Below are positions 12,546 to 15,725 of a stretch of 64,000 bases of DNA, piece after piece. The stretch covers positions 3,224,001 through 3,288,000 of the forward strand of contig OU015569.1 in the NCBI GenBank assembly GCA_907165135.1. Direction: 5' to 3'. The notes under the pieces are model-generated. The model was not told where the DNA came from. It was given only the letters and a program-made list of their open reading frames with translations, and did no database searches. A program made the translations under genes and the position numbers. How positions within the stretch are numbered: position 1 is the first letter of the stretch; every line of letters starts with the position of its first letter. Origin of the DNA: Oikopleura dioica (lineage: Eukaryota > Animalia > Chordata).

Positions 12546-13513
12546 TTGCTCATGGGAATTTTGAAAAATTCGCTTTTTAAGACATTAAAAACCCTAGCAT
12601 GTCCGGCCCATCCATTCGTAAGGCCTGTTAGCCAACACACAAGTCGAAACAAACTTAATCCAAATCCAAATTGCAAGGAAAAATACTTCAAACTACAACG
12701 AAACAAAACGCGTCTTGAAAGTATCAATCCTCCCAGTCGAAGGGAGGATTGGCTCGTCCCTGAAAACACATTCATCGGGCGGCCGGTTCAACACAGATTC
12801 AATAAGGAGAAAACTACAATTTCGATAAAGGCAGAGTTCGGCGGTCGAGGGGGCCTAAGTCACTCTAATCGCTTCAATACAGATATTATGGGAAGTCCGA
12901 TTTGGCAGCGCCCTGTTAGGTTCGTTGATGCACTGGCATTCCATTTTCATGAGATTTTTGAAGAGTGACCAGGTCGTATAATTTTGATGGAGGGCAGTGG
13001 AGTCTCAACCCTCGTGAAAACACCTTTGCTCCTCGGTAAAGAGCTGCCTAAAATCATCATCAAAATAATTCTAGCGAGAGCGCCGACTTTTCATTGAAGT
13101 TATTACGGAAGAACACGCTGCTTAGGTTGAACGCAAGAGATGAACTGCGAGTACAGCTAGACGGTAACCCAAAATAAGTACCAGGAATTCCAATCGTCAA
13201 TTTCCAGTCGCTTGCAACAAGAAACATGAACACGAAAGAGAAAAACGAGTTCGGCGACTACGACCTTCTCCAGAAAACGACCCTGTCTCGTATGTCATGA
13301 AGAAGAAGGAGAAAGATCTATCAGCATTGGTTTAAACTTTAAAGCTTCTCGCACACACTTCCAATTACTTATTATGAACCAGAACTAGAAAACGAATATA
13401 GATACAAGAGAATTGTCCGCTGGCTGACAGACGTCGAGTTCGAGAAGAAAACTGATCAGCTAACAAGTAAAATCACTGACCTTGCCTTTTCAAAAGTAAC
13501 TGAGCTGCTTTAG
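12546..13513 (+). CDS. Probable multi-exon hypothetical gene (5' boundary uncertain)
   Basis: Exon-like open stretches with donor sites, ending YEPELENEYRYKRIVRWLTDVEFEKK...VTELL* at 13511-13513. Convergent with the kinase gene. Confidence 0.35.
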
Positions 13514-13636
13514 AGATCGTTACAGTAGAAATCAACCACCCGGAAGAAACTTTCTTTGAAAACATAAAACGGAAAATAAAAAGAGTGAAACGTTGAAAAT
13601 CGCCGAATATCGCTGTTGAAAGTAAAGATTCTTGAG

Positions 13637-15725
13637 TTAGAAAAACTGCACAAGTACAAAAGTGATCAAGGAAAGTGCTAGCGTGGTCGGGGATGAAGCT
13701 GCGCAGGGAATGTCCCATGTGTTGTCGGATTGTTGCGTTTCGCATTGCGGGTACTCGGCGTAAGTTTCGCCCTTCGTGCATTTATCTAGAATTTCTCGTT
13801 ATTATTCGATCAGATCAATCAAAAAATCAAAAAAGCGCAAGAAGTGTCGTCCTTCCTAATCTCTTATAAAATTACTTACATCCATCAGGCGCCGCGAATT
13901 CCGACAAAACACCGCGCAAAACTTCGTTGAATCCCTTCCCCCAGTCAGGATTCAAAGCGTACAGAAAGGCGCTCCTTTCAAGAACGTACCAAGGCATGTA
14001 ACAGACAAATTCACCCTCGACTTCTTCAATCGTAAAGTTTCGCGGAGGGTTGAGTGCGTTGTATGCATCTGTGTAATTTCCAAGATATAAATTTACTGCG
14101 CCACTGTCAAGCTCGCTTCAAACGGTTTTCAATCTATTTGTTTCGGCTACTCCCGCATTTCCCAAAATCCTGGATTTCCCAAATCCTGGATTTCCCAAAA
14201 TCCTGAATTTCTCAAATCGCCAAATTTTGGGAAATGCGGGAGCAGCCATTTGTTTCAGAGCTCTCAAAACGTGGCTACAAAACCGATCCTTTGCCAGTTG
14301 AAAAAGTAGTAAAGCAAGTCCCAAGCACGCGGCCCGAAACCAGCGTTGTCGTAATCAGTTAGCATCAAGCGATCAAGAAGCGTATCTTTTTCTCCTCCAT
14401 TTTTTAGGAAAATATTACCAGCGTGGACGTCTTGGTGTCTGATTTTCGTATTTTGATGATTAAAAAATGAGGAAAACTTACGTCATAACAACAGGAGAGT
14501 TCGACATTTCTACGTTTTGTACGGCGAAATCGTAGATATCTTTAAGGCACGTAAATGAGGCTTTTTCGTCTTCAATCGGGTCTTTTTTGAAGTTATCATT
14601 GATGTATTCAAGCCCTTTTTCAAACAACGGATTGCTCAAGTGAACGCGGAGCGCATTAGTATTCCAGGGCCAGGGCTCCGAGCAAAATTTGATCGGGATG
14701 TCGATCTCTTCTTTCGTCATTTGATGAAGCTCCGCTAGTCGTGTCGCTACGGCCATGTATGTTTCCGGTTTGTGCAGATCTTTTACATCGACGTTTTTGC
14801 CACTGAGAAACTCTTCGAACTTGGCGTAGAAAAGGTTTTCGCCGCATGCATCGAAATTTCCGCAGTTGACATACTCAATTTCAGGAATACCAGGCTCGCA
14901 ATTGTCGAAATTGCCGCACACTTCATAATTAATTGGAAAGCCTTCCGTCTTCGAGCCGTAAAAAGCTGGTCCATTGCCGGCATCACCAACTGCTCTGTCA
15001 ACCTTTATCCGAAATTCCGGCTCTCCGACGAGCTCGTGCGGCTAAATTTACTAATGATGGTCGTTTGAAAATTTCAAGCTCATGATTAGATCTATTTGTA
15101 GGCCTCGGACGTAAAAAATCATCACCACCAGCCGGTCGTCGTACGGTAACAAGAGTAGGCTCATTCGAAAGCTCTTGAACAGGGCTTTCTGTTGGGCTTA
15201 TAAAAAAAATGGGCCCTGTCCTTCTTTTTCGAGATATTTGATTTTGAAGGTAAGCTTCGAAAAATATTTTTTATAATAACTCGTAACAGAAAGGGAGGGT
15301 CCAGTTTTTTTATCGGTCAAATAGAAAGCCCTTATCAAAACCTTTCGAATGAGCCCTCTCATGTTCCCGTACGATGACCGGATGGTGAAAATCGTCTTTT
15401 TTACGTCCGAGGCCTATCTATTTGACAAAATGATTCGAGTCGAATTTCGAATGAGCTTTCCCCAGGGGAAATAGCAAAGATATTATCTTTACCTTTTTGT
15501 AGATTTTCAATGCGGAAGTCAAGGTACTGTTCTCGCATTTGTAGACGACCGCTTGTTCTCCTTCGCCAAGTCTGCTTGATGTCGCTTCTATTAAAATTTT
15601 AAGAGGGTAAATCATTCAGGTAAGCAACCTTCTCCAAAGAACTCTTTGCAAGTGCTGAGCGCCTTTTCTGGAGATGTATCTGCGGCGAGAGTGCTCTGCG
15701 TTAGAAAAACTGGAAGCAGCCTCAT
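13637..15725 (-). CDS. Choline/ethanolamine kinase-like (APH fold) protein with predicted signal peptide and GPI-type C-terminal tail; 6 exons, ~428 aa
   Basis: Exons 15629-15725, 15493-15587, 14482-15041, 14289-14438, 13880-14115 and 13637-13785 all fit in phase. Motifs: TCKEFFG, LGEGEQAVVY, ALKIY, GNGPAFYG, EEFLSG, LAELH, SPVVMTHQDVHAGN and LTDYDNAGFGPRAWDL. N-terminus MRLLPVFLTQSTLA; C-terminus AASSPTTLALSLITFVLVQFF*. Confidence 0.82.
14145..14247. mobile_element. 103-bp MITE with 9-bp TSD (Mutator-like), intronic
   Basis: TSD ATTTGTTTC at 14136-14144 and 14248-14256. 24-bp TIR GGCT(A/G)CTCCCGCATTTCCCAAAAT. Internal tandem AAATCCTGGATTTCCC. Confidence 0.85.
15101..15414. mobile_element. 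314-bp MITE with TA TSD, intronic
   Basis: TA|GGCCTCGGACGTAAAAAA...TTTTTTACGTCCGAGGCC|TA, with imperfect inverted arms of about 75 bp. Confidence 0.85.

Follow-up and report, generated by a model that had tools for sequence, protein, structure and literature searches.

Introduction

Choline and ethanolamine kinases (PF01633; CHKA/CHKB, ETNK) are cytosolic enzymes that possess neither a signal peptide nor a GPI tail, and conserved cysteines of the disulfide type and sequons are likewise absent from them. The kinases of the APH group (PF01636), among them YihE/SrkA, APH(9)-Ia, Mph, the amicoumacin and corramycin kinases and CotS/YtaA, are bacterial; they are cytoplasmic or, lacking signal and GPI sequences, become assembled on the spore coat, and the CotS-type proteins sit in a matrix of extracellular type. 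In insects and nematodes, the EcKL/CHK-like kinases (PF02958 and PF07914, DUF1679) of the same clan are lineage-expanded animal small-molecule kinases, and the usual view of the EcKLs is that of intracellular kinases for detoxification or for hormones; the literature consulted names them as detoxification enzymes only.

Enzymes with the attachment and topology proposed here are CD73 5'-nucleotidase, alkaline phosphatase and ART1, which act on extracellular nucleotides or phosphoesters; their folds and their chemistry differ from those of the protein described below, and none of them is a kinase. The kinases of the secretory pathway, namely Fam20A/B/C, Fjx1, VLK/PKDCC, POMK and FAM69/DIPK, come from unrelated parts of the kinase superfamily; they are type II membrane proteins or soluble secreted proteins. 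We know of no secretory-pathway kinase (Fam20, Fjx1, VLK, POMK, FAM69) that is lipid-anchored. Such kinases work inside the ER and Golgi, where lumenal ATP serves them to phosphorylate proteins or glycans; reviews on them are available (PMC7948968; PMC9941534). In Oikopleura, GPI-anchored proteins have been implicated pharmacologically in the templating and release of the house (PMC3071929).

Here, we analyse a gene in a stretch of 64,000 nucleotides of Oikopleura dioica DNA (the window), which an earlier note had read as encoding a cell-surface kinase of the choline/ethanolamine kinase fold with a signal peptide and a GPI tail. Judged from its sequence, the protein probably has the choline kinase/APH/EcKL fold, is competent for catalysis as a kinase and enters the secretory pathway, and it is predicted to be GPI-anchored.

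Gene structure and transcript support

The gene lies on the minus strand (15725-13637), and its six exons (Table 1) join in phase into a protein of 428 aa that starts with MRLLPVFLTQSTLAAD and ends with CAASSPTTLALSLITFVLVQFF directly before the stop codon. Exon structure and length agree with the earlier note, as do the 12 Cys and the sequons, which are NST52, NYT314 and NFT327 in the spliced protein. An in-frame TGA is found 6 nt upstream of the ATG. Four of the five introns have GT-AG borders and intron 4 has GA-AG borders, and the 428 aa are obtained only with this choice. The GA-AG junction alone restores FFNWQSELDSGAVNLYLGNYTD, which is colinear with FFNWQSELGSLEHVDGYLTKYTD of the 65%-identical homologue P0019, and the intronless transcript contig L001, which encodes P0019, reads ...caaag/cgagctt... 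across the position of intron 4. Moreover, the genomic relatives L005, L006 and L007 have a GA..AG intron at the same place. Two further gene models, one of 414 aa with GT-AG borders throughout and a second of 423 aa, were rejected because they lack residues common to every homologue, and the GA-AG model was therefore adopted. A tblastn search with the family found no second family copy in the 64-kb window.

RNA contigs from a marine metatranscriptome (X1), 95-99% identical to the locus, contain the exact junctions 15493/15041, 14482/14438 and 13880/13785 and confirm three introns. One of these contigs covers 13634-13785, is spliced to 13880 and includes the stop codon as well as the hydrophobic tail, and an RNA contig of X2 covers 13898-14061. 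For the exons of the earlier note, RNA thus confirms three introns, the stop codon and the tail, while exon 1, intron 1 and intron 4, where RNA of this locus is absent, draw their support from colinearity with the L001 transcript. The contigs and the locus differ at nine positions, six of them synonymous and three conservative, which is a pattern of purifying selection. Two RNA-seq runs deposited under the name of the organism gave 0 and 3 partial reads and are uninformative on expression; the three reads are 90-95% alike with unlike flanks and probably stem from the WPWNT region of a paralogue. The gene is real, spliced and transcribed.

Table 1. Exons, intron 4 and sequence features of the kinase gene, in coordinates of the window.
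Feature	Coordinates	Strand	Content
Exon 1	15629..15725	-	aa 1-32; start codon; leader followed by ADTSPEKALSTC(26)KEFFGE; colinear with the L001 transcript of P0019, MRVFRAFLATAYAADTSPETALTTCKEVFG
Leader (exon 1)	15725-15684	-	MRLLPVFLTQSTLA
Exon 2	15493..15587	-	aa 33-64; ATP-binding part of the N-lobe; Cys50
Gly loop (exon 2)	15570-15553	-	LGEGEQ, aa 39-44
Sequon (exon 2)	15531-15523	-	NST
beta3 Lys (exon 2)	15513-15499	-	K60 in ALKIY
Exon 3	14482..15041	-	aa 65-250; both flanking junctions in RNA contigs
Cys-rich insert (exon 3)	14918-14844	-	C106-C130; limited to clade 1
Hinge (exon 3)	14825-14799	-	AKFEEFLSG
Family-specific invariant motif (exon 3)	14687-14658	-	FCSEPWPWNT
Exon 4	14289..14438	-	aa 251-300; catalytic core
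Brenner motif (exon 4)	14437-14414	-	HQDVHAGN, aa 252-259
Metal-binding motif (exon 4)	14359-14345	-	TDYDN, aa 278-282
GPRAWDLLYYF (exon 4)	14335-14303	-	
Intron 4	14116..14288	-	173 nt; GA..AG, caaag/gatcgg ... ttgaag/cgagc
Foldback element (inside intron 4)	14145-14247		small
Exon 5	13880..14115	-	aa 301-379; helical C-lobe
Sequon (exon 5)	14078-14070	-	NYT
Sequon (exon 5)	14039-14031	-	NFT
Invariant motif (exon 5)	14012-13989	-	EFxC(339)xxPW
Exon 6	13637..13785	-	aa 380-428 and stop codon; X1 RNA contig; conserved Cys382 and Cys394; GPI-type signal
Small residues and polar spacer (exon 6)	13705-13682	-	CAASSPTT, with C407-A-A-S-S as small residues
Hydrophobic end (exon 6)	13681-13640	-	LALSLITFVLVQFF

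Fold and catalytic residues

Single exons and homologues (P0019 and the ORF of L009) served as queries for Pfam, structure prediction and database searches, and the gathering cutoffs in Pfam are 29 bits for Choline_kinase, 22 bits for EcKL and 23.2 bits for APH. With 66.8, 41.8 and 34.5 bits, respectively, P0019 lies above all three cutoffs, and P0003 scores 64.5 bits against Choline_kinase. In Pfam, clade 1 of the family fits PF01633 best, over profile positions 69-209 of 300 only, and clade 2 fits PF01636 best; of clade 2, P0006 reaches 54 bits with APH and 30.9 bits with Choline_kinase. Taken singly, exons 3 and 4 of the window score 23.3 bits (4.7e-5) and 14.3 bits against Choline_kinase, each below the cutoff of 29 bits; exon 4 alone weakly matches EcKL, Choline_kinase and APH, and the other matches of the Pfam scan were weak ones to ABC1 and DUF2252 only. 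Orthology with the EcKLs is not evident from these comparisons. The Pfam scans of exons and homologues gave no match to the Fam20, VLK, POMK or FAM69 families, and the secretory-pathway kinases serve as a working analogy, the proposed resemblance being one of function and topology only. None of the bacterial NCBIfam families came near its cutoff; a weak match to TIGR02906 (CotS-type) was seen, and YtaA (2q83) was found by Foldseek.

Searched against the PDB, the family profile retrieved human choline kinase alpha at 2e-8, whose HNDCQEGN aligns with HQDVHAGN of the window protein and whose HNDxxxGN...DFEY aligns with exon 4. An AF2 model of the clade-2 L009 ORF, built from a 38-row alignment, has a pLDDT of 64.6; at this moderate confidence it names the fold class, not the pocket or the disulfides. 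With this model, Foldseek returned APH/choline-kinase-type kinases only and gave a probability of 1.0 to YihE, APH(9)-Ia, choline kinase alpha and the macrolide, corramycin and amicoumacin kinases, the APH group (TM about 0.45-0.55, identity 11-17%) being the best structural matches. Every match in the ESM Atlas was an APH, ChoK or EcKL cluster. A structure model of P0019 from a shallow alignment (pLDDT 53) was left out of the fold search. The Pfam scores of P0019, the profile match in the PDB and the Foldseek result agree with the fold named in the earlier note, and the protein is a kinase of the choline kinase/APH/EcKL fold, i.e., of a small-molecule kinase fold.

The four motifs that had been picked out from the letters (LGEGEQ, ALKIY, HQDVHAGN and TDYD) were all located, and their key residues are invariant: G42, K60, H252, D254, N259, D279, D281 and N282 are identical in six full-length members. 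With its catalytic motifs intact, the kinase is apparently active. A bilobal fold, HxDxxxxN and D-x-[DE] are common to the family and the choline/ethanolamine kinases. The second motif of the family, D-Y-D-N-A-G-F-G-P-R-x-W-D, differs from the choline kinase motif IDFEYxxxNxxxFDIxNHFxEW, with which LTDYDNAGFGPRAWDLLYYFFNW aligns: the first and the later Asp are retained, an Asp stands in place of the Glu, and N-H-F/E-W are not conserved. Substrate specificity is therefore not transferable from choline kinase. Furthermore, FCxxxWPWNT and the Cys-rich insert are without counterpart in choline kinases.

Family and distribution

Among 1.84 billion representatives, 18 matches were found, and the family is a small one that was met in Oikopleura dioica and marine plankton meta-omes only. 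It has two clades with about 30% identity between them. As far as the databases show, the family is confined to Oikopleura and related marine plankton. One O. dioica member carries the UniRef name 'CHK kinase-like domain-containing protein', and the annotated O. dioica relative P0025 has no hydrophobic tail at its end, which may be an annotation error. P0011 (2278 aa, 11 matched stretches) resembled a giant relative but was set aside as a spurious or low-complexity match, since Pfam assigns it the unrelated ICMT and PP-binding domains. A recent bacterial transfer was considered as well and set aside: the NCBIfam matches were all far below threshold (YihE-like, AmgK, APH(9) and CotS models) and gave no sign of it.

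Terminal signals and cysteines

All full-length members, down to about 30% identity, carry signal-like leaders of 14-17 residues, in which M[RK] is followed by 12-15 mostly hydrophobic residues with small residues at the end and then by acidic or polar residues. This comparison comprised the window protein, P0019, L005, L009, L010, P0021, P0023, P0024 and P0006 with a corrected first exon (L003). In the window protein, MRLLPVFLTQSTLA precedes an A and has, by inspection, a basic n-region, a 7-residue Kyte-Doolittle value of 2.3, T at -3 and A at -1; the leader is short and moderately hydrophobic, with a core of LLPVFL followed by TQST. Leaders equivalent to it are present in eight relatives, some of them weak, and the leader of P0021, MKLFSLFDKAINSALA, includes D and K.

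The C-termini of P0019, P0003, P0006, P0021, P0012/L010, L009, L012, L008, P0023 and P0024 consist of a small-residue triplet, 4-7 polar residues and a hydrophobic run of 12-15 residues that stops at most two residues before the end. In some members, such as P0006 (NGA-REM-GVALG...), the spacer has just 3-4 residues. The tail of the window protein follows the layout of a GPI signal, as judged by inspection, with C/A/A/S/S, PTT and LALSLITFVLVQFF as the final 14 residues, and at least nine relatives show the same layout with unrelated sequences. A normal membrane span would require a longer hydrophobic run, and besides leader and tail no further hydrophobic segment was found in the protein. The character of the termini has been kept although their sequence diverged, which we count as support for a secretory and GPI-anchored protein.

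The Cys totals are even (12, 12, 6 and 6). C26, C50, C184, C339 and C394 align invariantly, and a sixth site, C382 of the window protein, is shared with a shift of 1-2 columns. Relative to P0019, two Cys of the insert are missing from the window protein and two others are present, so that Cys change in twos; even totals and paired changes are as expected for disulfides formed in the secretory pathway. The window protein, P0019 and L005, which are the clade-1 members compared, all retain the sequon NST52. Leader, GPI-type tail, even Cys and sequons together set the protein apart from the cytosolic choline kinases. The termini proposed in the earlier note are backed by RNA for the tail, by colinearity with L001 for the leader and by conservation across the family, all read by inspection, and homologues with the same termini, which the note had suggested searching for, were indeed found. 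With Cys and fold, these termini support its prediction of a secretory, GPI-anchored kinase.

Proposed mechanism and alternative explanations

From the features described above, we infer that the protein enters the ER, receives a GPI anchor and acts as a catalyst. Residues 1 to about 14 or 15 would be the signal peptide that directs it into the ER and is cut after ..TLA or ..LAA. In the ER, disulfides would form between the Cys, and as many as three sequons may be glycosylated. A GPI anchor would then replace the last 20-22 residues, attached to a small residue in the region of C407-A409, and the kinase domain would reside first in the lumen of ER and Golgi and later at the outer face of the plasma membrane. 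Using ATP and Mg2+ bound via K60, D254, N259 and D279, it would phosphorylate a hydroxyl group on a small molecule, or on a sugar or other group of a component that is secreted or belongs to the matrix. The scarcity of ATP outside cells speaks against activity at the cell surface.

The protein could also be secretory without carrying a GPI anchor, with the tail acting as a short membrane- or lipid-associated segment or as a retention signal, or with the kinase being shed as a soluble protein of the lumen or the exterior. We regard this as unlikely: it shares all evidence for ER entry with the GPI-anchored kinase, and the omega site is not fixable by inspection, the spacer being reduced to 3-4 residues in some members (P0006), but at least nine members have a textbook GPI layout and a run of 12-15 residues is too short for a stable span. 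Slightly less probable than this is a surface-anchored binding protein without catalysis, which would serve as a receptor or matrix organiser on a kinase scaffold. Many kinase-fold proteins of the secretory pathway are pseudoenzymes, e.g., Fam20A, and little ATP is found outside cells, both of which fit such a protein; moreover, GPI-anchored scaffolds have been proposed for the templating of the Oikopleura house (PMC3071929). However, all canonical ATP-binding, metal-binding and catalytic residues are invariant across clades that are about 30% identical, which points to selection for catalysis.

Quite improbable is a cytosolic kinase that is held on an organelle by a C-terminal tail anchor and whose leader is perhaps a weak mitochondrial presequence. 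The weak leader core in some members, the R/K near the N-terminus, the abundance of ATP in the cytosol and the cytosolic location of choline kinase, EcKL and APH relatives speak for it. Against it, the tails end within two residues of a run of 12-15 residues, with a basic residue in few members, the acidic D16 and E20 directly after the leader are unlike a presequence, and the five invariant Cys positions with the shared sixth site, the even counts and the Cys-rich insert are unexpected in a cytosolic enzyme; NST52, moreover, is retained in the clade-1 members compared. Mitochondrial presequence and tail anchor are thus less likely than signal peptide and GPI signal. It is highly improbable that the gene model has produced the termini artificially and that leader or tail is absent from the true protein, for although RNA of this locus is missing for exon 1, intron 1 and intron 4, an RNA contig carries the tail exon with its splice junction, the intronless transcripts L001/P0019, L009/P0022, P0023 and P0024 encode both termini in one ORF, and the reading frame is closed by a stop codon 6 nt before the ATG.

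Significance and perspective

In the literature searched, no secreted or GPI-anchored kinase of the choline kinase/APH fold was found, in line with the statement of the earlier note that no equivalent is described. A far-reaching and doubtful extension of the GPI-anchored kinase is that the family may be without precedent in two ways, as a GPI-anchored kinase of whatever fold and as a recruitment of the choline kinase/APH branch of small-molecule kinases to the animal secretory pathway, and that it may act at the apical oikoplastic epithelium or in its Golgi on a house glycan, a cellulose-associated or other component, or a small molecule from seawater. Roles in the house matrix, in detoxification or in choline scavenging are speculation. 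The house proteome has been reported with its oikosins and without mention of a kinase (PMC3390340), and it thus gives no evidence for the protein as a component of the house. If the localisation fails, the protein would be an ordinary lineage-specific CHK-like kinase. Cultures of Oikopleura dioica exist, as do protocols for RNA interference and in situ work in this animal, which makes the reading as a secretory, GPI-anchored kinase directly testable.

If this reading is true, phosphorylation in the lumen or outside the cell would have been invented independently by placing a choline kinase/APH core behind a signal peptide and in front of a GPI signal. As small molecules and sugars are the usual substrates of this branch, the enzyme would point to a chordate metabolite or glycan that is phosphorylated and hitherto unknown. 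Finally, expression in the oikoplastic epithelium would make it a concrete GPI-anchored candidate for the GPI-dependent steps that have been proposed for the building of the house.

Gene Model and Transcript Support

The exons were assembled by script on the reverse complement of 15800-13500. Joined in phase, the six exons encode a protein of 428 amino acids that has 12 cysteines and three sequons (NST52, NYT314, NFT327), values identical to those of the earlier note; the ATG is preceded by an in-frame TGA 6 nt upstream. Introns 1, 2, 3 and 5 are of the GT-AG type (41, 451, 43 and 94 nt) and intron 4 (173 nt) is GA-AG. Models using GT-AG introns throughout (414 and 423 aa) lacked residues common to every homologue and were discarded. 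With P0019, a homologue of 426 aa and 65% identity, as query, tblastn extended the alignment into the stretch first taken as intron in the all-GT-AG model, and the GA-AG junction yields FFNWQSELDSGAVNLYLGNYTD, colinear with FFNWQSELGSLEHVDGYLTKYTD of P0019. The genomic relatives L005, L006 and L007 carry the same intron (caaag/gaat...ttaag/cgagctt, slashes marking the splice sites), and contig L001 reads ...caaag/cgagctt... across this position. L001, which encodes P0019, is a 1605-nt contig of a JGI sample and, having an intronless ORF, is taken as a transcript; this ORF starts with MRVFRAFLATAYAADTSPE, and the 92-nt 5' leader is similar to the DNA upstream of the window gene.

Coordinates of the gene and of associated elements in the window
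Feature	Position	Strand	Remark
Exon 1	15725-15629	minus
Exon 2	15587-15493	minus
Exon 3	15041-14482	minus
Exon 4	14438-14289	minus
Exon 5	14115-13880	minus
Exon 6	13785-13637	minus	stop codon included
Foldback element	15099-15416		inside intron 2
Small foldback	14145-14247		inside intron 4
WPWNT motif region	14662-14693		matched by three reads
Likeness to L001 3' end	13365-13470	opposite to gene	just downstream of gene

RNA contigs of run X1, a marine metatranscriptome, are 95-99% identical to the window and match the model exactly at the junctions 15493/15041, 14482/14438 and 13880/13785. One of them spans 13911 to 13634 across the last intron, so that spliced RNA includes both stop codon and hydrophobic tail. 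The RNA check of the exons proposed in the earlier note thus holds for three junctions, stop and tail, while exon 1 and introns 1 and 4, which RNA at the locus does not cover, are supported by comparison with relatives. The X1 contigs differ from the window at nine nucleotides; six of these changes are synonymous and the other three conservative (K>N, K>R, E>D), in keeping with purifying selection on the gene. In an RNA-seq run that carries the organism's name, three reads match the WPWNT motif region at 90-95%, solely over this 32-nt stretch and with unlike flanks, and probably derive from an expressed paralogue rather than from the window gene.

Most of intron 2 is taken up by a palindromic (foldback) element of 318 nt. 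Its 20-nt termini (TAGGCCTCGGACGTAAAAAA) are perfect, and its 126-nt arms show 77% complementarity. Run X2 contains RNA contigs that match the element at ~95% but have unlike flanks; further copies are therefore present and transcribed elsewhere. The foldback in intron 4 has 24-nt termini that are 96% complementary, and its interior holds four tandem, overlapping units of 16-17 nt (TCCTGGATTTCCCAAA); both longer introns are therefore largely foldback insertion. Compared by eye, the 3' end of L001 (1478-1605) resembles DNA just beyond the gene; if this likeness holds, a convergent neighbour would be syntenic in the relative, with 3' ends nearly touching or overlapping.

Family and Distribution

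A phmmer search with exon 3 against 1.84 billion representative proteins returned only 18 matches, word-indexed searches recovered the same small family, and a metagenome scan added 12 further loci. The family forms two clades with ~30% identity between them, of which clade 1 (window protein, P0019, P0003) has a Cys-rich insert and clade 2 (P0006, P0021, P0022-P0024, L008-L015) has none. Annotated members in the Okinawa assembly of O. dioica are chr1.g1266 (P0006) and chr2.g6040 (P0021), and O. dioica P0012 and P0025 are entered as 'unnamed protein product', the latter with the UniRef name 'CHK kinase-like domain-containing protein'; public databases label family members by these two names only. 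Unnamed proteins of marine metagenomes and metatranscriptomes make up the rest. Along with the GA-AG intron, this membership helps to place the window in Oikopleura. Within the 64-kb window, tblastn found no second gene copy. P0025 (297 aa) ends in ...GEENSRRIVMEL with no hydrophobic tail and with its N-terminal part missing, and may be either a truncated annotation or a member that lost its anchor signal.

Fold and Catalytic Residues

Taken alone, exon 3 matched Pfam Choline_kinase (4.7e-5) and exon 4 matched EcKL, Choline_kinase and APH, all below threshold. Full-length P0019 scored above gathering for Choline_kinase (66.8 bits), EcKL (41.8) and APH (34.5), as did P0006 of clade 2 for APH (54), Choline_kinase (30.9) and EcKL (29.7). 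The family profile retrieved human choline kinase alpha from the PDB at 2e-8, SPVVFSHNDxHxGNIF...LxDFDNAxxGPRxWDL being aligned with SPVVFCHNDCQEGNIL...LIDFEYSSYNYRGFDI. The AF2 model of P0019 was poor (pLDDT 53); that of the clade-2 L009 ORF, built from 38 alignment rows, reached pLDDT 64.6 and pTM 0.63. With the L009 model, Foldseek returned at probability 1.0 only APH/choline-kinase-type kinases (YihE, APH(9)-Ia, choline kinase alpha, and the corramycin, macrolide and amicoumacin kinases), and ESM Atlas matches agreed. Homologue domains, PDB profile match and Foldseek bear out the kinase fold proposed at first reading: the window protein belongs to the clan of small-molecule kinases and lies at roughly the same distance from choline kinase, EcKL and APH.

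Invariant in all six aligned full-length members are G42, the beta3 lysine K60, the hinge residue E141, the Brenner motif (H252, D254, N259), the metal site (D279, D281, N282) and a family-specific FCxxxWPWNT motif. Judged by these residues, the protein is very probably catalytically active. The residues that form the choline pocket in the choline kinase motif are not conserved, so that the sequence gives no substrate reading. For enzymes of this fold the known acceptors are small-molecule and sugar hydroxyl groups and, in a few instances, proteins.

Conserved Leader, Cysteines and Tail

Location signals were judged by their conservation across family members.

Termini of family members (slash, end of leader; hyphens, tail segments)
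Member	Leader	Tail
Window protein	MRLLPVFLTQSTLA/AD	C-A-A-S-S-PTT-LALSLITFVLVQFF
P0019	MRVFRAFLATAYA/AD	SGS-TANLQT-SILLVTLLQLFLH
L005	MRIFGAFLVTAYA/AD
L009	MKLFPLLAIQSAFA/AP	NSSA-TTQN-FGIALAFILLTVFNL
L010	MKLFSLLAINSALG/AS
P0021	MKLFSLFDKAINSALA/DG	GSD-AREY-SLALGLLFLSIFR
P0006 (real first exon in L003)	MKFLLLLDAVAISSILA/DP
P0023 and P0024	similar to those listed

All recoverable N-termini consist of M, R/K and 12-15 mostly hydrophobic residues of which the last are small, followed by acidic or polar residues; their character is conserved and their sequences are divergent. The hydrophobic cores are short (7-residue Kyte-Doolittle maximum 1.5-2.8). The published N-terminus of P0006 (MSSNQFDPGRSYRRRNSK...; OKI2018_I69 chr1 g1266, L003 5924-6103) is a frame error; in L003 a short upstream exon and a GT-AG intron give MKFLLLLDAVAISSILADPTADETAKAEEICRDVAGGDPKVF, colinear with P0021 and with a signal-like leader.

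In the known tails (at least nine), a cluster of small residues is followed by 4-7 polar residues and then by a hydrophobic run of 12-15 residues that ends at most two residues from the chain end. This layout reads as a canonical GPI attachment signal, and the hydrophobic run falls short of the length of a standard tail-anchor span. Besides leader and tail there is no hydrophobic segment.

Cysteine counts were 12, 12, 6 and 6. C26, C50, C184, C339 and C394 (window numbering) are alignment-invariant in both clades, and a sixth site (C382 in the window protein) is common to members, one to two alignment columns off. Compared with P0019, the window protein has two of the six insert cysteines fewer and carries C229 and C407 in addition, so that parity is kept. 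The pattern is that of disulfide-bonded lumenal or extracellular proteins.

Interpretation and Possible Physiological Role

Leaders, tails and cysteines together make a secretory, GPI-anchored kinase the best reading of the window protein, a prediction that we consider probable. The earlier note had reached this interpretation from one gene and proposed a search for homologues with the same termini; leader- and tail-like ends recur in relatives, and their character, like the cysteines, is conserved family-wide. A secreted or otherwise membrane-associated kinase with no GPI link is rather unlikely. That the protein is a surface pseudo-enzyme or binding protein is unlikely, given that all catalytic residues are invariant. 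The cysteines, together with the length of the tail and the acidic residues directly after the leader, make a cytosolic tail-anchored kinase quite improbable. The transcripts make a gene-model artefact very improbable.

Literature searches on Oikopleura choline kinase and GPI-anchored kinases, and on secreted or signal-peptide choline kinase or aminoglycoside phosphotransferase-like proteins, yielded no description of a kinase with leader and GPI tail, in line with the earlier note, which knew of no described equivalent. Two EcKL papers deal with detoxification enzymes of the nematode intestine and with the expansion of gene families rather than with secreted kinases, and the Oikopleura house proteome paper (PMC3390340) lists no kinase. 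The family appears to be lineage-restricted and would join a known fold and chemistry to a topology and membrane attachment not found described.

For the predicted GPI-anchored kinase, the signal peptide would bring the nascent chain into the ER, where disulfides and perhaps N-glycans would be gained and GPI transamidase would exchange the last 20-22 residues for the anchor. The kinase domain would face the ER and Golgi lumen first and the cell exterior later. As context for this gene, not as evidence, drug treatments point to a role for GPI-anchored proteins in templating and release of the Oikopleura house (PMC3071929). Since ATP is present in the lumen of the ER and Golgi but scarce in seawater, the kinase would more likely act in that lumen, or in the enclosed space beneath the house rudiment, than on free seawater solutes.
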